In this document: one piece after another, positions 12,120 to 47,565 of the stretch
Position numbering within the stretch: the stretch's first letter is position 1
How the letters are laid out: each line of letters opens with the position of its first letter
Assembly (NCBI GenBank): GCA_004764695.1
Contig: SMSO01000031.1
Location: forward strand, 6,678,761-6,742,760
DNA: 64,000 bases
Source: Schizochytrium sp. TIO01
Taxonomy: Eukaryota; Protista; Bigyra: Labyrinthulomycetes
Direction of reading: 5' to 3'
The notes under the pieces: model-generated
What the model was told of the DNA's origin: nothing
Database searches by the model: none
The model's input: the letters and a program-made list of their open reading frames with translations, nothing else
Position numbers and translations under genes: made by a program

Positions 12120-12326
12120 TATTGAAGTAATATACAGCTACTGTCTAACCTAACCTAACCTAACCTAATCTCCTGTCCGTTGGACTGACATCATGCATTC
12201 ATCTCTACCTGTATGAAGACCTGAAACCCCGATAACTCATATATCATCCTCTTTCTCTTTCTCCTGAGTTCGTCATCCTTGTCAGACTACCTCTCCACGC
12301 TTCACAGCACAGGCTACTCTGCAATA
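12120..12326 (+). repeat. 5' LTR (TATTG...CAATA)
   Basis: Identical by eye to 17636-17842. Has a 5-bp terminal inverted repeat and is preceded by TSD CAACC. Confidence 0.95.
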
Positions 12327-30272: not shown

Positions 30273-31556
30273 TTAGGCCTCAGCAGCGAGCTTAACGGCG
30301 GTCGCGGCAGCATCGTCGAGGTCATCAATAATGATGGCCTTCACATCAGATTTGTCGAGGATTTCGCGGGCCTTCTCCACGTTGGTGCCACGAAGACGGA
30401 CAACAAGCGGCTTGGCAAGGCCGATCTCCTTAGCGGCGGCAACCATACCCTCAGCAATGATGTCACAGCGCATGATTCCACCGAAGATGTTGACAAGGAT
30501 GGACTTGACCTTCTTGTCAGAGTCAAGAATCTCAAAAGCCTTGAGCACGGCATCCTTGGTGGCACCACCACCAAGATCGAGGAAGTTGCTGGCACTGCCG
30601 CCGTGGAGAGTGACGATGTCAAGAGTGCTCATGGCGAGACCAGCACCGTTGACCATGCATCCGACGGATCCGTCAAGACCAATGTAGTTGAGGCCGTACT
30701 TGGAGGCCTCAACCTCGCGGGGGTCCTCCTGGGTGCGGTCACGGAACTCAAAAATCTTTTTCTGGCGGAACTCTGCGTTGTCGTCGAAGTTGAGCTTGGC
30801 GTCAGAGCAGAAGACGTCACCGCTCTGGGTCTCAGCGAGCGGGTTGATCTCGACGAGGGTGCAGTCGCACTTAAGGAAGAGGTTGTAGAGGGAGCGAATG
30901 GTGTGAGCAGCCTTGGCGTGGGCCTTACCCTCAAAACCGAGGTTGCGGGCAAGACGCTCGACCTGCTCATCCTGAAGGCCGCTCATGATGTCAATCTTCT
31001 CAGTGAAGATCTTCTCCGGGGTCTCTTCGGCAACATCCTCAATGTTCATACCACCGGCGGGGGAGCCAACGAGGGTGACACCAACGTGGGAGCGGTCGAG
31101 GAGGATGCTGAAGTAAGTCTCGCGCTTGATGTTGAGGCGCTCCATGAGGAGAACACGGTTGCAGGGCTTGCCAGCCTCGCCGGTCTGCTTGGTGACAAGG
31201 AGCTGGCCGAGCATCTTGCTGGCAACCTCCTTGGCCTCCTCGCCCTTGGAGATCATCTGGACACCACCCTGGTATCCGTTCTTGAAGTGGCCACGGCCAC
31301 GGCCACCAGCGAGAACCTGGGCCTTAAGGACGGCATCCTTGCCGAGCTCACCACTCTCGAAAATCTTCTGAGCCTCCTCCGGGGTGTCGGCGTACTTGTT
31401 CTTGGGAACAGGCACGTCGAACTCGCTCATGACCTGCATACTAGCGTACTCATGGATGTTGAGGTTGCGCTTCTGGGTCTTGCGGAGAAGCTGTGCGCTG
31501 CGCGCGGGGCGGCCGGCCTTGGTGGCCATGCGCGAAAATCCCATGAGGCCAGACAT
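30273..31556 (-). CDS. SUCLA2: Mitochondrial succinyl-CoA ligase beta subunit (ADP/GDP specificity not determined)
   Basis: Transit peptide, then LNIHEY, KAQVLAGGRGRG, EINPL, DAKLNFDDNAEFRQ, GCMVNGAGLAM, NFLDLGGG, NIFGGIMRCD and RLRGTN. Confidence 0.96.
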   Translation of the reverse strand: MSGLMGFSRMATKAGRPARSAQLLRKTQKRNLNIHEYASMQVMSEFDVPVPKNKYADTPEEAQKIFESGELGKDAVLKAQVLAGGRGRGHFKNGYQGGVQMISKGEEAKEVASKMLGQLLVTKQTGEAGKPCNRVLLMERLNIKRETYFSILLDRSHVGVTLVGSPAGGMNIEDVAEETPEKIFTEKIDIMSGLQDEQVERLARNLGFEGKAHAKAAHTIRSLYNLFLKCDCTLVEINPLAETQSGDVFCSDAKLNFDDNAEFRQKKIFEFRDRTQEDPREVEASKYGLNYIGLDGSVGCMVNGAGLAMSTLDIVTLHGGSASNFLDLGGGATKDAVLKAFEILDSDKKVKSILVNIFGGIMRCDIIAEGMVAAAKEIGLAKPLVVRLRGTNVEKAREILDKSDVKAIIIDDLDDAAATAVKLAAEA

Positions 31557-31646: not shown

Positions 31647-32775
31647 CTGTTGATTGAATCCGTACGTGCAAAAGCAATTACAGTTTTGTTTGTTGTTCAA
31701 TTCACCCGACCAGAACCAGAGAACCCAATATGTGTAAAGAACGGAGATAGGAAGAACAGAATAAAACAAAAAGAAACCAGAGCCGAAATATGTGAGGAAA
31801 AGGACCAAAAATAAATAGGAAGCAAAATGAGGCCCAGTTGGTGCAGGTAGAGTGCAAGAGAGACGGGTGCGAGAGACAGCAGATACAATTTTTACATCAC
31901 ATCGTCCGTATCGAAAAGAAATGGTGGTCCATTTCCATCGCATCATCGTCGTTACGGAGAGAGCACGCGCGCGAAGGGAAAACAGACGTCCATTCATTCA
32001 TTGGCAGAAAGGTCAAACAAATTGCCCAGCATCAGAAAGCACGCGAGGGACGTTGGTTGCGGGGCCACAGCAGATGTGCAGTTGAGCATGCATAAGGAAC
32101 AAAACGAATAGATAATGCATTCATAGAGAACAGCAAACGAACAAGAGGAAAAAATGTCAATCGAATGCGACCAGCAACGCCAGCGCAGCATCCATTTCAC
32201 CGTGAGCACAGTACCGGCCAAGGCAGGCAGTCAAAGAAGCGAGGGGAATGGCGGCGAGGGGAATGTCAGAGGTTCAATCAAACAGATGGTTCATTGACAG
32301 CGGGTAGAGAGAGAGACATGTTGCGTCCAGAGCAGCGACAGGAGGTTTGCATCACATAAATCGGGAAACAAACAACAACAGCAGCAGCATAATCATACAG
32401 AAAATTTATCCGAGTCACAGGGGTAGCAAAGGCCGCAGGCAACACGAGTGAAGGTCAGCACGCAGAGCAACATATCAACAAAACAGAAAGAAATTACAGC
32501 AAAAATAGCACGAGTTCACGTCAGTCATCATTTTCATCAACATAATATTTTCCCCATTATATCTATCTTTCTCTATTTATATAAATATATAAATATAGAT
32601 ATAATCATCAGTCTACCCCAACATCGCGTCAGTCCGTCGCCCGTCTCTTTTCGGTTTCTTTCTTTCATGCCTTCTCTTTCGCTCTTTCCCTGTGTCTGTC
32701 ATGCCCCCCACCGACCCGCACCCAATGCCAGTCGGGGTTGAGGGAACAAAAACGGGGGTGTAGTATGCACCTTAC
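31647..32775 (-). other. Probable long 5'UTR intron of the succinyl-CoA ligase beta gene, with a 914-nt AG-free 3' region (donor position uncertain)
   Basis: Acceptor TCAACAG| at 31647, 90 nt upstream of the ATG. No CT on the + strand between 31649 and 32562. Branch-like GATGACTGACG at 32529-32519. Donor candidates are GTAAGG 32775, GAG|GTGAGA 33077 and GTAAGC 33351. Confidence 0.7.
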
Positions 32776-38060: not shown

Positions 38061-41000
38061 CCTAGTTTTCATCTGCTTCTGCTCCGATCAGATAGACCAG
38101 CGCCGGCAGCTCTGCGAGGAGGTCGGGTGAATGGGCGAAGAAAGCGCCGCCGCCGCCCTAAATTCGATCGATTATTCCGCAGGTTTTCAAGTCAGAGAAT
38201 TGGATGAGCTCAGGTTTTGGAAATCTCTGCTCTTATTTCTCATATTGAGAGGAGGAGGATACGGTCGTGCCAAAACTCAACATGTTCAAACAAGGATCAT
38301 AGTGACAAACAAACCAACCAAGAAACAAACCAACCAAGAAATGAACCAACCAAGAAATGAACCAACCAGGAATGCGGTGCGGATGGCCTTCTTGAGCTGC
38401 TTGTATGGATTGGCCATTCAAGTGAGCGATCGATCACCTTTGAGTATACTTTGGAATGATATTTGACGAAATGATATATTCTATTTTTTATTTTTTATTT
38501 TAAAACTGAGGCTTCTTTTTATTTTTATTTTTATTTTTTATTTTAATATTCAACTACTTCTTACAAATAAATGGTGAAAGCAGTTCACATTTGGAGCGCA
38601 GTCGTGAACGAAATCAAAGACAGTCGCAGAAATTAGACAGCCAGACGATGAGAAGCGCCTTGGGGATGGGTTATATTTGAAGATCGTACATGTGTACATG
38701 GTGGCGAAGGAACTATTTTCAATGAGATACGAGGTTGGCTTCATGGTTTGCTTGGAAAAATTAGCCTGAAGAAGCAGGGAATGTGAAATGTGGAATGGCC
38801 TGAGTCCTAACCTTTGTCGGAAAATCTAACTGGCACACCCATAGAGGACACTATTTATGCGTCAGAGCGACGTCATGATGGCGTCAGCACTGCTATCTTC
38901 TCATTTTCTTTTTTTAATGTTAAAAGCGCCTTCGCGCCTATTCCGCTCCTCTGTAACGATCGTGTTATACAACACCGATGGCTTATAGAGCTCAAGGCGA
39001 AATTCGAATTTGCGGCACGCTGGATCAAAGCCAAGACCGTTATTTTGCGTTTTGGTTTCTGAATATGCGACCCCATCGACCAAACCAGGTTTCGTTCGTT
39101 CAAGTGCAAATGCTGATTTCTTGACTCTTGACCTTCATCTTTTAGAATTACATTATACATTATAAACACGGACCGTGCTGGCAGTGTAAGATCTAATACA
39201 GCGAGGGGTGTCACCGCGATTGGGATGTATGACTAACTCATGAGGGAGGGCACCGAGTCCAACATGATCGGTGCCGACATAGCAAAATGTCCAACCTGTT
39301 CTACGATAAGCGAGCAATCTTGACTGGCAGCAATCAACTAAGCGCTATCATCTTGAAAAGAGGCGCACACTGCCACGCACGACATGTTCGTGACTATAAA
39401 CGAATAACCTCGCATTCGGGAGCCCAGAATCCAGCGACGCTCAGGGAGGGTTTCACTTTCATGGCATCTGCGTTAAAAAGAAACGCTCTGGGTTCGGGCG
39501 TCATCCAACACAAAAACCGCCATGAACATCCTACGACGCGGCTGGGCCCTGATAGTGTCATATGCTGGCATCTATCTGCGAGCTTGGAGCGTAGCTGTGC
39601 CTGTTTGCTGCGAGCTTCAGAGCATCTTCTTCAACTATCCCATTCGCATTGTTTTGCTGTTGGTTTTCATTAAATTCCGTTTATTTATAATATTTTATTT
39701 TTATTTTTAAGTGTTAATTAAAACTCATTTAAATTAAAAAAATAATCAAAAAATAAAAGAGAAGAAAGCATTTCCCTGTACATATATATATTTTTCCTAT
39801 TCGTACACACTCATATGGGTGCTCCTCGCTCTTGAACGCGACGACTTGCTCCATTCTTTCCAAAGTCTGCTTCTCACATCGACCTCTCTCCTTCTTTCGG
39901 GAGGTCTCTGCTCAGGCTCCTCATGAAACCCTTTCGATGATCCTTTCTTTTCTCACTTAATAACTTTAAAAAGAAAAGTAAAAGTAAAAGTAAAAGTAAA
40001 ACAATTAATCTTCAAATTCAAAAGCCATCTTATTACTCCTCTCAACAGCACCAACCAGCAGTAGGACCCCCCTAACGCCCCCTACCACCCGATATGTGGT
40101 TGTGGGGATGGCGCAACCACTGGCGAAACTTGCATCCGACGCTTGTACGGACTGACTCATCAATGATTGACTGCCGACACCATCGTGCTCAAAGTCCTCG
40201 GCACCTCGAGAGCCCTCGGCCCAAGGCCCGTAACCCCCGCCGCCGCTACGCCCTGCGCTCGCATGCAGCCAGCCTGCCTGCCTGCCTGATTATGCGGCTA
40301 GCTGCAGGCAGACCTGCCTGCTCGCGCCTTGCGGCAGCCGCCTCGAACTTGGGACTGAGCGCACAGTGCAATTCTCGCGGCGCAGCTGGTGCGGGTCTAA
40401 AAGGCTTGCGAGGTCTTGGAAATGGGCATATCCTTCCTTCTCGGTCCCGGTTTCCGGTGGACGGGCGCCCTGGGCGAAGGGGCTTAGCCCGTCGTAGCAG
40501 GGGCCTAGGGGGCGCTATAATATGAGGGGGGCGCACTGCATCGATGCCGGTGCAAACTACTGCAGAAAAGGCGCATCCTGCCATATCTTGGAGCTATTTG
40601 AGCCTGCCTGAAGATCCGGTACCCTTTGGCTACCTGTTTATCCTTGGAGTGTTGCGAACTTTGCGAAGAGCACACCGCTTCGTCACGAGTAGGAAGTTCT
40701 CAGGCACGCGGGAAATCCGCCAAACGTAAAAAATGCGTTAGTGGTACCGACACGGCGCACGGAGAAATAGGTACTGTAAAACAGTACCATTTGTCCGTTC
40801 GCCGCTTCTGGAGGAGGGTGGATTGTTGTAGAGGAAATGCTGCAGCTGCGTGAGGACAGGCCTTGGTTCTAGTTGCATTTGTACCTCATGAACTGACACA
40901 TAAGGCTGAATTAGAAAAGAGGGGGAGAATTGAGTGCAGAGACTTACAAGAACCACAAAAGCAACAGCAAGAACCTTCTACTGCCATTTTATCAGGTAGA

Positions 41001-41302
41001 TGTGCACTTACGTGCTGGCTATAGCCGCCGTAGAACGCACATCCTGAGGTTGCGGAGTGTGTACTTACTTGTGGGAGAGCAGCTAAGGTAGCCAAGTAGA
41101 AAAGGCCAGCAAGACTTTCGCGTTCTCATTTTAGGTCTGTCAAGTTCTGACTGCTAAACCAAGCGGTCGAATTGCAATCATCAGCAACAAACAGCAACAT
41201 AGGTTGCACGCAAGTCTTCCTTGTTGTGCTGATTTCTTTTGTTTGTTGCAGGCAATCGCGAACGGACACGCGCCGAGGTCGTGTGGCCTGCGAAGAACAA
41301 CA

Positions 41303-41338
41303 CGACGCGACGCGACGCGACGCGACGCGACGCGACGC
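41303..41338 (+). repeat. (CGACG)7 CpG-dense pentanucleotide repeat upstream of the putative TF gene
   Basis: cgacgcgacgcgacg... seen directly. Confidence 0.9.
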
Positions 41339-41701
41339 AAGTGATCCTCTACGAGCTAGCTCTGTAAGACAGAGCGATAGCTAAGGATCGGATTCGACAA
41401 ATCTCGTTAAAGTTCGACAGGCAAATCATACCATATCTTCATCGAGGTGAACGCTTACACGTGCAAGACGATTTGAGATTTCTTCAAAGCATCGTCGCCG
41501 AGCATTCCGTAGTTCTCTGGCGCATCAAGCGGCGTCACTTTCCTCAAGGTCTTTCGTCAATCAAAACGCACGAATCTCAACTTGGCGCATTTATTTAGGT
41601 AATCAGGGTTCGTGTTTTCTGTTTTTCACACGAAAACGCACTCGATCGATACACGCACGCAGTATAGCAGGTCGGTAGGATTTGGAAAAGTAACAATCAC
41701 A

Positions 41702-42747
41702 ATGGCGTGCGATCAAGGTGACACATGGCTCTTTGAGCCCCTCAGTCCGGATACGTTGACGCTTGGCGAAGGCGATCAAGTTAGCATGGGTGATAGTGCC
41801 CTCGATACTCTATTGGGAGATGACCTGCTTAACGAGGCCGTGCAGCTCCTTGGGGCGGAAGATTCTCAGACCAATATCATGCTTCAGAGCAGCGCACCAG
41901 GCGCAAACACTTCTGCGAGCAACAACAGCAATAACAACAACAACAACAAACAACAACAGCTATCAAGACGACAACTTCCCAAATCATTTGTCAAGAAGCA
42001 GTAGTTCTAGTAGTAACATCCGCGGCAGTATGGTGATGACCAGCAATCACAGCTCTCGTTTAAGCAACCACAAGGAGCGTATGATGGCCACTATGAACTT
42101 CCGGCAGCAAGAACCAGATTTCTTCTGTGGGAAGTAACAACAACGAAGATGCTGCTGCCTTCGACTTTGTGAGGCAGCAAGACATGCGTCTTGGCACGAT
42201 GGGTCAGAGCAGCGATGAAGGTGAATTAGAGCGGGAAATCCTTGAGTCTCTTGCAAGTGGAGATCCGGGTAAGCCCGAGGTAGATGAAGATCAGACCTTC
42301 AATTTTGTTGGTGACATCAAGCGTGCCTTTTCCCCCATCAAGCAGATTGTATACAACGGCCCGCGCTCCTCGTCTTTCACTGAGAGAGTCGATGATGACT
42401 GCGTAAGCCCGGAACCCTCGGACTTTTTAATGCCGCCACCTATGCATCAGCCTCACGCTTACAAATCTGCTGATGTTATCAGTGGAATGCAAGCCAGCAG
42501 CGTCAACAATGTCATTAACAGAAATAACAACAGCGTAAATAGCCAGAATAATAAAACCTCTGCGCCGCATCCGTACATTGGCAATAGTAGTAATAGCAGC
42601 AGTAGCAGCAGCCTCATGAGCCGCAAGGCTTCAGTGACAATGCCTAAGGACGACCTCGCTTCAGATCACGAGCCTCTCCTGAACTCGAACCCGAATCCGA
42701 ACCCGTGGCCTTCGGCAGCAGATTATAGGCGCATCTTCCTCGACTTC
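41702..42747 (+). CDS. Exon 1 of a putative transcription factor (N/S-rich), broken by two apparent +1 frameshifts
   Basis: ATG at 41702. Three overlapping ORFs (41612.., 41763.., 42127..) of similar composition step +1 each time. Ends at a phase-0 donor TTC|GTAAGT at 42748. Confidence 0.65.
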
Positions 42748-43477
42748 GTAAGTTTATTCTTGTTTCACTCAATGTGAGGGTGCTTGGGCGTGAGGAAAAT
42801 ACGATGATGAAGGATGGTATTGTGTTGGGATTGAATGAGTTGTTGCGCAAGACAATTGCTTGTGTTACTTCTAATTAGAGGAGAATCGGCGGGGGGCAGG
42901 CTTTTATTTGTGATGGATGAGAGAGAAAAATAACTGCACCGGCGGCGCTCTCAGATTTATACCTCTTTTTTAAAGTTCCCCGCACTGAGAGGAGCTATAG
43001 GTGTAAAGATAAAGAGAGACACCACCACATGTACTAAAAGAAAAGGCTTTTTAAGGACAACTTGACGAGCGAGCCATAAAAAATACTGGTGCCTAATCTT
43101 TTCTGAAGGGCGTGTGGTGTTGCATATTGAAATCGATGCATGCATGGCCTTGAAAGGGCGCGTGGATGTTCAACGCAGTTTCTTAGTGCATGTGTTCCAG
43201 AGATATCGGAGCGAGAGAGAAAGAGAGAGAGGGGGAGGGTTGGTGTAAGGGATTAAGAGATCATTTTGTTAAACGAGGAGTGTGTCTGAGGAAGAAAAAG
43301 AGAACACAAAGCAGCACCGCACCGAAAAGCAAAAAATCATTCAACGCGGAAATCAGAAACCATAAGGAAAGAAAAGAACGCAGATTGAAAACAACAACCA
43401 AAAGCAAACAAAACAAAAAAGAGAATGCGAAACAGAAACAAAAGAGGCAAAGGAAACATGCACGAAAGAACAAGAAG

Positions 43478-43508
<31 letters not shown>

Positions 43509-45266
43509 AATGCAATGACGAAGAAAGAAATCAGAAAGAAGAAAGAAGAAGAAAGAAGAAGAAGAAAGAAAAGAAAAAGAAAAAACTAGCGCTGCAAACT
43601 GAAGAAAAGGAACGGAAAGGATCTTTTAAAACGCTGCTGCAAAGCAAGAGAACAAACAGATACAGATAAGAGAGACCGACCACAGAGACGAAGACAGTCA
43701 CATCTACCGAGTTCACGACAGGGAGATCCAAACTCCGCCTGCGTTCTCTTCCTTCTTCTCTCACCCCGCGAATCGCAGCCTTCGTGCGTGCGCTTTTGCA
43801 GAGGCGGAAGAAGGAAACATTAAAATTTAGAGAGATCCTCCTCTTTTTCTTCAAGTTCCTCTTCTTCTTCTTCTTCTTCTTCTTCTTCTTGAAGTTCTTC
43901 TTCTTCATTCCTCGCATACGTTGCGTGCGGGAGCGAACTAAGTCGTTCACTCTCCCTCCTCTCTCGCGCCTCTTCTTCGCTTGCTTGCGTTCTTTTCTTG
44001 GCTTCTGTTCTTTTCTGTCGTGGCGGTTGTTCCACTCAATCACTCACTCACTCATTCATTCTAAGTGGTCCAAGATCGCGAGCACGCGATCGAGGGAGAT
44101 CCAGATTTCACCGGCTGCGAGCCAGGCAGGAGGGAGATCCAAGAACTAACTGAGAGGCGATCTCGCATGAGAGAAATGGAGGGAGAGAAAGATAGGATAG
44201 CGGAGCAGAGCGAATGGGAATGGGAATGGGTTCGAGAGCGAATGCAGAGAGGACGAAAGGGCTTTCACTCGGGGAGAGATGAGGGAGGGCCGGGGCGGGC
44301 GAACTGAGGTGGTGCGTGTGCAGACAGAGACAGAGAAGAACTCGGATGACTGACGGAAATGCTGTTGACGTTTTTATTTTTGCTGGTTTCCTTCCTTCCT
44401 TCCTCCTTCCTTCCTTCCTTCCTTCCTTCATTCATTCATTCATTCCCTCCTTCCTTCCTTCGTTTGCTCGCTTGGTTGCTTGCTTGTTTGTCGATTGCGC
44501 ATTGTTTGCATATTCAATGTGTTCTTGGGTACGCATTCCATTTCATTCCACCTCATTTCATTTCATTCCATCTCATTCCATTTCATTCCATCTCATTTCA
44601 CTCGGCGACGACTGCCTTTACTTTACCTTTGGGGCCATTTGCGATACCATACTTCCATGGCGGCTCTCTCCCTCCCCGCACTCGCGCACGCGGGCTCTCG
44701 AAATCGAAATTGAAATCGATTCGAAACGATGGACTCCGTCTGCCACGCGATACGATACGCACTGCCTGCCTCTGGGCTGACGTGCGGTCGACGTAATGCC
44801 GCCTGCGAAACGACGCAACTCGCCACCGCGACCATGGCCGCCTTCACTTACTTCCTTACTTCTCGCGCACTGCCTCCTTCATTCCTGCATGCCTTCACGC
44901 CTTCATTCCCTCACTTCTTCCTTCCTCGCCCACCTGCAACTGCTCTCTCTCTCTCTCTCTCTCGTGCCTCCTGCGTCGGCTGTTCATTCGCGCATGGTCC
45001 GCGGCTGCGCGGTTTGGTGATGTCTTGTCTTGCGCGATCTCCGCTTCCCGTGCGGCTGGCCTGGCCTGCCTCGACATCTCTGCGGTCTTCGATTTGCCTC
45101 TCGCGGCGTTGACTCTGACTAACTTAACTTTGTGTGCGCACACGCCGGAACGAACTTGGACATGGATCGCGTGTGCAACGCAAAATAACAATATCCTGCG
45201 ACGAATCTCTGCGCCGAATAAAATACCAACAAACGAACGAACGAACAAACAAATAAACAAACACAG
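42748..45266 (+). other. 2519-nt phase-0 spliceosomal intron with a 926-nt AG-free 3' region
   Basis: GTAAGT donor and ...AAACAAACACAG acceptor. Splicing joins RRIFLDF|LADETKYPLYTVEQL in frame. No AG from 44339 to 45264. Branch-like GATGACTGACG at 44345-44355. Confidence 0.85.
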
Positions 45267-46424
45267 CTCGCCGATGAGACCAAGTACCCGCTGTACACGG
45301 TGGAGCAGCTCGGCGTCTGCAAGCTGACGGGAACGCCGAAGCAGCCGAGCTGGCTGTACTGTGAGCCACGCGTCGGTATCTTCTTCTTCGAATGCGAGCA
45401 CCTGCGCGGCAAGGCCGGATATGGCTTTCCCAAGGCTGAGGGCACGAAAAAGCTCTTCGAGTGGAAGAAGACCTCGTACATCAACGAGGTGCCCCGCGCG
45501 AAACCGCTGGTGTCTTACATCACTGCCAATGGCAAGCCGCGCAAGGTTGAAGGCAACCCGTACACCACGGGCTTTCGCATGCGCATCGTTAAGATTGCCA
45601 ACCCTGATCAGACACAGTATGGAAAACGTGCCAAGCAATTAGTCCTGTGCGACATTCGCGAAGCCCACGAGCTTGCGAAGCGCCAAGGCCCGCGGCCACC
45701 GAAGCGTGTTTCGAAATTCGATTCTTCTTCCACCGATGGCTACTCCATGCATGGATCTTCGCTTCACGGATCGCTTCAGGGCAGTCCACTCAGCACGCCC
45801 AGAAACAGTGGTTCTACAGCAGCAGCAGCAGCGGCTCGGTTACAGCAACAACAGCAGCAACAGCAGCAACAGCAGCAGCAGCAGCAGCATTACCTTCGGG
45901 CACAGCTTCTTCAGCATCAGCAGCAACAACAGCTGCAATCTCGCCAGCACCTCCACCAACATCAACACCAGCTTCAGCAACAACAGCACCACCACCACCA
46001 CCCGCATCAGCTTCAGCATCAGATGACGCAAGATGAGCGCCACGAGTGTGGAAATGGCCACCAAGACCATCTTCCGCAGCGACGCACCATGCCTGTGCAT
46101 TCTGTGCAGACGCCTCGGGACATGCCAGCTCCAAACTCTCGCAAGACTCCACCTTCGATCGACACAAGCCCGAAAGAAGTCGAGTCTCCCGTTTTTATTA
46201 CGGCCTCCACCCATCGGCCGTACCACCCGACGCCCGTTCAGCGTACCCAGCTCGTGCATCCTCACCCCACTCCGGCTTGGGCAGCTCGCGCAACGAGCGA
46301 CATGAACGCAATGCCCTTGTCTCCCCTGAAACGTCTTTCCATTCAGTCCCAAGAGGACGGCGCCAGTTTCGTCAATGGGTCCCCCAAGGGCTCCAAGATG
46401 CAGCGGCGCAGTGTTTGCCCATAG
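45267..46424 (+). CDS. Exon 2 of the putative transcription factor: basic CG-1-like domain, then poly-A/poly-Q/His tracts
   Basis: In frame with ORF 45300..46424. GC3-rich codons in the ordered domain; CAG/CAA poly-Q at 45843-46020. Confidence 0.8.
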   Translation, partial: LADETKYPLYTVEQLGVCKLTGTPKQPSWLYCEPRVGIFFFECEHLRGKAGYGFPKAEGTKKLFEWKKTSYINEVPRAKPLVSYITANGKPRKVEGNPYTTGFRMRIVKIANPDQTQYGKRAKQLVLCDIREAHELAKRQGPRPPKRVSKFDSSSTDGYSMHGSSLHGSLQGSPLSTPRNSGSTAAAAAARLQQQQQQQQQQQQQQQHYLRAQLLQHQQQQQLQSRQHLHQHQHQLQQQQHHHHHPHQLQHQMTQDERHECGNGHQDHLPQRRTMPVHSVQTPRDMPAPNSRKTPPSIDTSPKEVESPVFITASTHRPYHPTPVQRTQLVHPHPTPAWAARATSDMNAMPLSPLKRLSIQSQEDGASFVNGSPKGSKMQRRSVCP

Positions 46425-47565
46425 ATGAGTTCGTCTACACCATTCGCCTCGGAAGGCGTTTTTTTAATACGTTTGATCGAGACACAGAATTCTTGGACAA
46501 ACAGGAATCAAAAGAACAACTTATCAGAACATAAAAATACACCCTGCAATTGAATGAATGAGTTGAACAAAGCCTGTTCATGCACTAACCCGGTCACTAT
46601 ATCATTGATCTCCGCCTACACCTCGTTTTAATCTTTATTGAAGTGCATGCTTACGCAACACTGTTTCATAGAATTGGTATCCAGTCCACAACTGGTTATT
46701 TTGTTAATGCACACGTACACTAGCAATGCCTCTCGAGATTGTCGCCGCCGCACGTGCTTTGTTATGTCCTTCAGTTGGTTCGTTTTACATGGTACATGAG
46801 TTGAATAAACACCGAGTAGTAGTGGAAAGGTGTATTATTCTGGCCCATTTTCATAACAAACCTTAAGCCCTCTGTAAACATAAACATAAAGATTTTACAA
46901 CTACCTTTTCTAAATAGCCATTCCTCCTCTAGACACTATAATACTACCTTTTCTTGAGACATTATGAATATAACATTGCCCCATGATTGACTATTTACTC
47001 TTTTTCATTCGAAAATTGAAAGCCTGGCCCGTTGCGAGAAGCGATGTGTTCACAAGGTAGCTTACATTTTAAAAACAAAATAATAGTGACCCTTCGCAAG
47101 GAAGAAAACGCAATTAGCTATGGTTCCCAAATCGATTCCAAGGCCATGTAATCATGTGTACAATAGAGCCTACCAGCAATGTAGAGAATACAATCTAATC
47201 AACTAAATACTTGAGTACACGTCCTAGTAAATCTCAACTGCTCGACTTTGATCGATTGAATTATCCTAGGATAGAGTAGGTAGGTGTCTAGGTATTGATT
47301 TTGCTTAAGAAATTGAAATTGTGAATTTTGCGCAATTTGGCTTATCTCATCGACATGTAAACAATATATACAAGTGAAGAAAATCAATAAGGTTCTGAAA
47401 GATTAGATTGCAAAATGAAAACTTGACCTTTCACATTTTCGAGAGCAGAAGTACAAATCAAATGAGATGATTTTACTTGATTTACTGCCAAATAGTTCCT
47501 CATAAGTTTTATAGTCACCATCAGCAAGATACAAATAACAATATGCAGATTATATTATTCTTAAG

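Follow-up and report, generated by a model that had tools for sequence, protein, structure and literature searches.

The window, the whole 64-kb stretch of DNA that was analysed, carries on its plus strand a gene whose coding sequence is interrupted by a single intron of unusual architecture. The parts of this gene and its intron, with the evidence for each in brackets, are as follows:

41352..42747, plus strand: upstream exon, to the reach of the spliced contig (X9 record 28 and X1 record 1, from 41309/41352), continuing at 45267
42748..42753, plus strand: 5' splice site GTAAGT (sequence, and the joint in four runs)
42748..44338, plus strand: AG-rich 5' part of the intron, with purine-rich blocks and (GAAAGT)n / (GAA)n repeats (AG count, motif scan)
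44339..45264, plus strand: AG-exclusion zone, 926 nt without AG (dinucleotide gap scan, shuffles)
44345..44355, plus strand: GATGACTGACG, candidate distant branch site, with candidate branch A at 44353 (sequence, recurrence, enrichment)
44376..44460, plus strand: U-rich box ATTTTTGCTG (44376-44385), then (TTCC)n, together a candidate polypyrimidine tract (sequence)
45109..45128, plus strand: proximal branch-like cluster TTGACTCTGACTAACTTAAC, made of four overlapping motifs, TTGAC, CTGAC, CTAAC and TTAAC (139-154 nt before the acceptor)
45265..45266, plus strand: 3' splice site AG, in an ACAG context (sequence and contig junction)
45267..45806, plus strand: downstream exon, open to 46424 (contigs)

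A preliminary description of this DNA had predicted a junction at 42747/45267 and had noted that joining GTAAGT (42748) to the acceptor AG gives an in-frame protein, and both statements were borne out. The junction, with GT..AG ends and 2519 nt skipped, was present in contigs of runs X9, X12, X10 and X1, which come from three studies, and it was the single joint found across 41000-46900 in the Logan contigs of these four runs, being the same in all of them. The flanks of the junction exceed 255 nt on each side in a 1991-nt contig (X9) and in a 2055-nt contig (X1). Since X9 has contigs in neither the intron nor the intergenic bin, the runs were read as transcriptomes (run record: guess 'RNA?'). 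The last codon of exon 1 is complete (phase 0, ...RIFLDF), and the reading frame continues past the junction (LADETKYP...).

The host protein contains long Q, H and N runs, and when the exons of its gene were searched one by one against Pfam, there was no match even at E = 10. The transcript contigs all stop at a CAG/poly-Q repeat in exon 2 (45807-46024, plus strand). Purine repeats, (GAAAGT)n and (GAA)n, occupy 43440-43910 (plus strand) in the 5' part of the intron, with (TTC)n following ~300 nt later, and they are a potential long hairpin of the pre-mRNA. Elsewhere in the window, identical 32-nt contexts at 12183 and 17699 (plus strand), 5.5 kb apart, fit the two LTRs of a copia element. A search of the whole window for known RNAs (Rfam, gathering threshold) found none.

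The acceptor at 45265-45266 is the first AG following the one at 44337-44338. The absence of AG from this interval had been pointed out in the preliminary description, and at 928 nt the gap between the two AGs exceeds every other in the window, where the second longest measures 188 nt. Among the sixteen dinucleotides, only CT also has a gap of more than 434 nt (916 nt, 31647-32563), and this gap is an AG-free tract of the minus strand. The zone, referred to below as zone 1, is poor in neither A nor G: it contains 160 A, 176 G and 39 copies of GA, as well as every dinucleotide other than AG, and the dozens of AGs that the preliminary description expected there amount to ~30.4 when calculated from its composition. 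In 20,000 shuffles of zone 1 the minimum was 13 AGs and none had 0, and the chance of zero AG, by arithmetic from 160 A and a G share of 0.19, is ~1e-15. The void is specific to AG and to one strand. Its onset is also as abrupt as first described, with 164 AGs in the 5' 1,591 nt of the intron (10.3 per 100 nt; window mean 6.7), and then none.

When the window and 200 kb of upstream flank (264 kb, both strands) were scanned, the only AG-free gaps longer than 300 nt with normal complexity were zone 1 and one other, zone 2; a geometric model gave an expectation of 0.02 for gaps of at least 200 nt in the same sequence. Microsatellite, in the form of (TTCC)n, (CATTY)n, (CT)n and (CAAA)n, makes up about a quarter of zone 1, and the ~680 nt of non-repetitive sequence are likewise without AG. 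The three SNPs and two deletions of X12, which are too few to test selection, create no AG.

At the 5' edge of zone 1, 6 nt past its start, lies GATGACTGACG (44345-44355), followed by the long U/C tract noted previously. This 11-mer, which contains GACTGAC, is separated by 6 nt from the nearest AG on its 5' side, and from its candidate branch A44353 to the acceptor G is a distance of 913 nt. The 100 nt following it are rich in pyrimidines (Y = 0.76, T = 0.47). At the other end, the last 100 nt before the terminal AG are A-rich, with Y = 0.27-0.41, so they do not constitute a pyrimidine tract, and in zone 1 the sequence leading up to the acceptor is A/C-rich, (CGAA)n / (CAAA)n. This stretch (45228-45262, plus strand) matches many unrelated contigs in the RNA runs, and a closely similar CAAACAAATAAACAAA..CAG is located just 5' of the ATG of a ~3,770-codon ORF, ~195 kb upstream of the window; the repeat may be a common leader or intron-end repeat.

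Matches to YTRAY occur in zone 1 at 913, 898, 486 and 154-139 nt before the acceptor. The last group is the cluster at 45109-45128, which includes the proximal GACTAAC (45117-45123) mentioned in the preliminary description; the strong CTGACTAAC at -144 has its candidate branch A (A45122) in this same sequence and is a better match to the classic consensus than the head motif. Downstream of the cluster is an A-rich, purine-containing stretch with no pyrimidine tract. The 5' part of the intron (42748..44338) contains just four matches to YTRAY, all of them followed by an AG at a distance of 3-11 nt and none by a pyrimidine tract. A perfect ACTAAC is also found at 44146-44151 (plus strand), 200 nt before the zone, where the sequence is dense in AG and rich in purines; this ACTAAC should activate the AGs around it if a branch site could work without a pyrimidine tract beside it.

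The combination of an AG-free tract with the same 11-mer at its head recurs in a second position of the window and at a third locus, L001:

31647..32563, minus strand: zone 2, AG-free, 916 nt between AGs (dinucleotide gap scan)
32519..32529, minus strand: GATGACTGACG heading zone 2, with its A at 32521 (sequence match)
L001:1133-1511 = G000:C3 near 507904, minus strand: L001 AG-free tract, the third case (11-mer match)

In zone 2, ATTTTTGCTG follows 12 nt past GATGACTGACG, and 874 nt separate the motif A (32521) from the terminal AG. The terminus is CAACAG, ~90 nt 5' of the start codon ATG (31556) of a succinyl-CoA ligase beta gene without introns (30273-31556, minus strand; ATP-grasp_2, E = 1.5e-20), and a candidate 5' splice site, GTAAGG, is present at 32775-32770 (minus strand), 250 nt upstream of the zone 2 motif. 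Zone 2 is probably a 5'-UTR intron. In L001, GATGACTGACG comes after a purine-rich stretch and is followed by about 369-376 AG-free nt, ending in GTACAG 45 nt 5' of an ATG, with GGTAAG upstream of the tract. The downstream ORF looks, by eye, like a mitochondrial carrier, and the L001 tract is a putative 5'-UTR intron. All three tracts end in ACAG, and all three lack AG on the strand that is sense for the gene downstream. The last YTRAY before the terminal AG is 366 nt away in zone 2 and 202 nt away in L001.

We considered whether the zones are copies of one element, and this was ruled out by a pairwise alignment of zones 1 and 2 and a three-way alignment of the head regions, in which homology was confined to the 11-mer and the TTTTTGCTG box. 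Since the three tracts are unalignable beyond the head, they are independent.

The behaviour of the motif across the genome was evaluated by pattern searches at the level of coordinates. The 11-mer GATGACTGACG has 85 sites in the genome, ~39 of them in two tandem arrays, and 18 of the 46 non-tandem sites are followed by at least 32 nt free of AG (background probability 0.063, P ~1e-10). For unique GATGACTGACGV sites, more than 92 AG-free nt lie downstream in 5 of 34, with the first AG at ~93-97 nt in 2 more. The background for such long runs is 0.004-0.007, corresponding to fewer than 0.3 expected sites (P 5e-6 to 1e-10), and the enrichment is still far from chance without the index case. Judged by coordinates, the 11-mer heads at least 4-6 further tracts of more than 90 nt. 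The pattern CTGACG-N5-30-TTTTTGCTG had 12 genome matches, compared with 1 for the reversed control. Outside the tandem arrays the 11-mer itself is only weakly over-represented (35 versus 26 for a 12-mer control). The shorter GACTGAC showed a raised AG-free fraction that is confounded by (CTGA)n microsatellites, and an ab initio intron set, intended as a baseline for branch distances, was too noisy to use.

The two tandem arrays, at L002-L027 (G000:C4:246-266 kb) and at G000:C30:8.206-8.214 Mb, consist of ~477-nt repeats. Each unit contains an 84-nt RNI-type LRR exon and a ~390-nt intron, in the arrangement ...CAACAG / exon / GTAAGTTGG, and in about 40 of these LRR-exon repeats the 11-mer is positioned 64 nt before the inferred CAACAG acceptor. 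Based on this exon-intron structure, the 11-mer looks like an ordinary branch site in the LRR introns. Most LRR units carry a GAG downstream of the motif and before the inferred acceptor. For GAG, then, the 'first AG' rule does not apply strictly, and the sequences suggest that the organism is able to skip at least this trinucleotide. From the motif to CAACAG, in their 3' parts, the LRR introns are nearly identical between units and the first exon codons vary, making the intron more conserved than the exon.

Branch sites pair with the GUAGUA box of U2 snRNA. The U2 snRNA gene of this organism was located at C36:2305511-2305706 (minus strand), and we infer that the extra GAU of GATGACTGACG would not pair with a canonical GUAGUA box. 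A compact or bridging RNA structure that shortens the ~900 nt was also considered, and it was rejected on the folding results: folds of the whole zone had no extra stability relative to shuffles (z = +0.85 and +2.44), and a duplex between the head (first 200 nt) and the tail (last 90 nt) was not significant (z = -1.9, -1.3 and +1.5). Complementarity between TG-rich and CAAA-rich segments that had been seen by eye was gone when the duplex was evaluated. Contig depth, which is not quantitative, gave no sign of a stable 1.6-kb lariat loop, with the zone covered at least as well as the 5' part of the intron. The contigs, which as assembled sequence cannot show branches, yielded no back-joined reads.

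In published distant branch points, the AG-exclusion zone has at its 5' edge a consensus branch site and, next to it, the tract (PMC1431707). Because the anatomy of zone 1 matches this description, a distant branch point with its pyrimidine tract, using the first downstream AG as acceptor, is the best explanation for the locus, and one in which we place slightly more confidence than doubt. In such an intron, the spliceosome would commit at the 5' edge of the zone, on GATGACTGACG (A44353), the U-rich tract and (TTCC)n, and after the first step the first downstream AG (ACAG, 45265-6) would be taken as acceptor. Any AG arising between branch and acceptor would act as a premature acceptor and hence would be purged, so that the 926-nt tract would be held free of AG by selection on splicing, and the zone would still be able to grow by AG-free insertions and microsatellites. 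A44353 would then be the branch in use and the second step would reach across ~900 nt, possibly by long-range scanning, a mechanism taken from other organisms. The preliminary description had arrived at a similar proposal, which is supported in part: much of what it relied on stands, including the spliced 3' end of the intron, the AG-specific void, the head motif with its U/C tract and the first AG as acceptor, to which the recurrence of the tracts can be added; its choice of A44353 as the branch nucleotide is still that of a candidate, with a rival in the cluster at 45109-45128.

More tentatively, and with confidence somewhat short of even, we suggest that these loci may represent a class of introns in which GATGACTGACG and a U-tract commit the spliceosome, and the first AG (ACAG) is found at most ~0.9 kb away without any bridging structure. 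If so, they would be a natural demonstration that the distance over which a 3' splice site can be sought, once the branch has formed, is for practical purposes unlimited; there would be several such cases, independent of one another, and many would lie in 5' leaders.

The alternative that survives best places the catalytic branch at the proximal CTGACTAAC cluster (A45122, -144) and leaves the GATGACTGACG/U-tract module as an auxiliary element, an occasional branch, or a U2AF/SF1-type platform. The 770 nt upstream of the cluster would be AG-free since minor use of the head module, or of the mid-zone CTGAC (-486), makes AGs into cryptic acceptors. We consider this reading rather unlikely as a whole, even though CTGACTAAC lies within four overlapping YTRAY motifs (-139 to -154), would fit the U2-pairing consensus one position better than GACTGAC, and could do without a structure bridging 900 nt, of which none was found. 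Human distal branch points, moreover, often coexist with proximal ones and contribute modestly (PMC5378181). However, what comes after the cluster is an A-rich, purine-containing stretch rather than a pyrimidine tract, and 144 nt already counts as a 'distant' branch point. If branch sites must be YTRAY, a proximal branch also does not hold as a general solution, since zone 2 and L001 are without this motif within 366 and 202 nt, respectively, of the terminal AG. A proximal branch would, in addition, still require that the spliceosome recognise the head module, to explain where the zone starts. Were the proximal site nevertheless the branch, the extra 770 AG-free nt would still call for an explanation and would be a sign that decoy branch sites upstream are strongly selected against.

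It is improbable that the AG-free tracts stem from some other strand-specific constraint or process, with the 11-mer serving as a protein-binding site (bZIP-like ATGAC half-site), for example in a pyrimidine-tract protein platform controlling intron retention, in a promoter or leader DNA element, or through AG-free microsatellite growth: two of the three sequenced zones, both putative introns, do lie directly 5' of start codons, about a quarter of zone 1 is microsatellite, and the conserved 11-mer appears longer than U2 pairing needs, but AG alone is missing, from the ~680 nt of non-repetitive sequence as well, the same motif stands at branch-site distance in the LRR introns, and all three ends are ACAG. 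To our knowledge, splicing is the sole process that selects specifically against AG, and a non-splicing cause fits poorly with a loss that is AG-specific, that affects the sense strand in three of three cases, and that in zone 1 ends exactly at an RNA-verified acceptor.

How the 3' splice site is found after branching is debated, with linear scanning and diffusion or collision among the candidates and a part for helicase proofreading as well, and very long distances are beyond the reach of in vitro substrates. If the distant-branch reading is true, an efficiently spliced natural intron with ~900 nt from branch to acceptor would be a clean genetic test bed, and its value is increased by the recurring, recognisable head motif and by the fact that the microbe, according to the run listing, has been sequenced in several studies, under several organism labels. 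There would also be a practical consequence for annotation, in that gene finders seeking branch sites less than 100 nt from acceptors will mis-annotate such introns and apparent 5' leaders.

Branch-acceptor intervals in yeast run from tens of nucleotides to ~150 nt, shortened by a stable hairpin. Our locus shares with Saccharomyces cerevisiae a strong, yeast-like branch consensus at a long distance from the acceptor, and in both the acceptor used is one that lies 3' of this consensus. In S. cerevisiae the long branch-acceptor intervals depend on secondary structure (COF1 and others; PMC3239191), in contrast to zone 1, where we found no fold or head-tail duplex above chance that would bridge the interval.

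Human distal branch points, which have been mapped by lariat reads and are usually binned at >100 nt, act for the most part as regulatory 'holding' sites that add modestly to splicing (PMC5378181). They are conserved, have U2AF2-type tracts and are sometimes found beside a proximal branch point, and the locus described here resembles them in these respects. Unlike the human distal sites, the AG void here implies sustained selection across ~900 nt.

The closest relatives are the distant branch points of vertebrates, which have AG-exclusion zones and 'mega' polypyrimidine tracts and extend up to 400 nt from the acceptor (PMC1431707, PMC7969005). Examples are alpha-tropomyosin exon 3, with its branch point at -175, PTB exon 11, with an AG-exclusion zone of 381 nt and the branch site UACUGAC at -351, and OGDH intron 4a, with an AG-exclusion zone of ~280 nt (PMC1431707, PMC7969005). 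Judged by the criteria for distant branch points (Gooding et al., 2006), our intron has an AG-free interval far exceeding the usual 40 nt or less and ending at an RNA-supported acceptor, a consensus at the 5' end of the zone, a tract beside the candidate branch, and AGs that are not excluded upstream. As in the vertebrate cases, the AG-free interval opens with a CUGAC-type site and an adjoining long pyrimidine tract, the sequence immediately before it abounds in AGs, and the first downstream AG is the acceptor. The differences are in scale and in setting. The distances to the candidate branch, as judged from sequence, are 913 nt and 874 nt here, compared with up to 400 nt in vertebrates; the host is an intron-poor unicellular eukaryote, in which an identical 11-nt head motif recurs; and nothing indicates mutually exclusive or cassette exons, the cases being one coding intron and two putative 5'-UTR introns. 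The comparison suggests a branch-acceptor distance two to three times longer than any given in the papers cited here, and what is new here is an extreme, recurring form of this known class.
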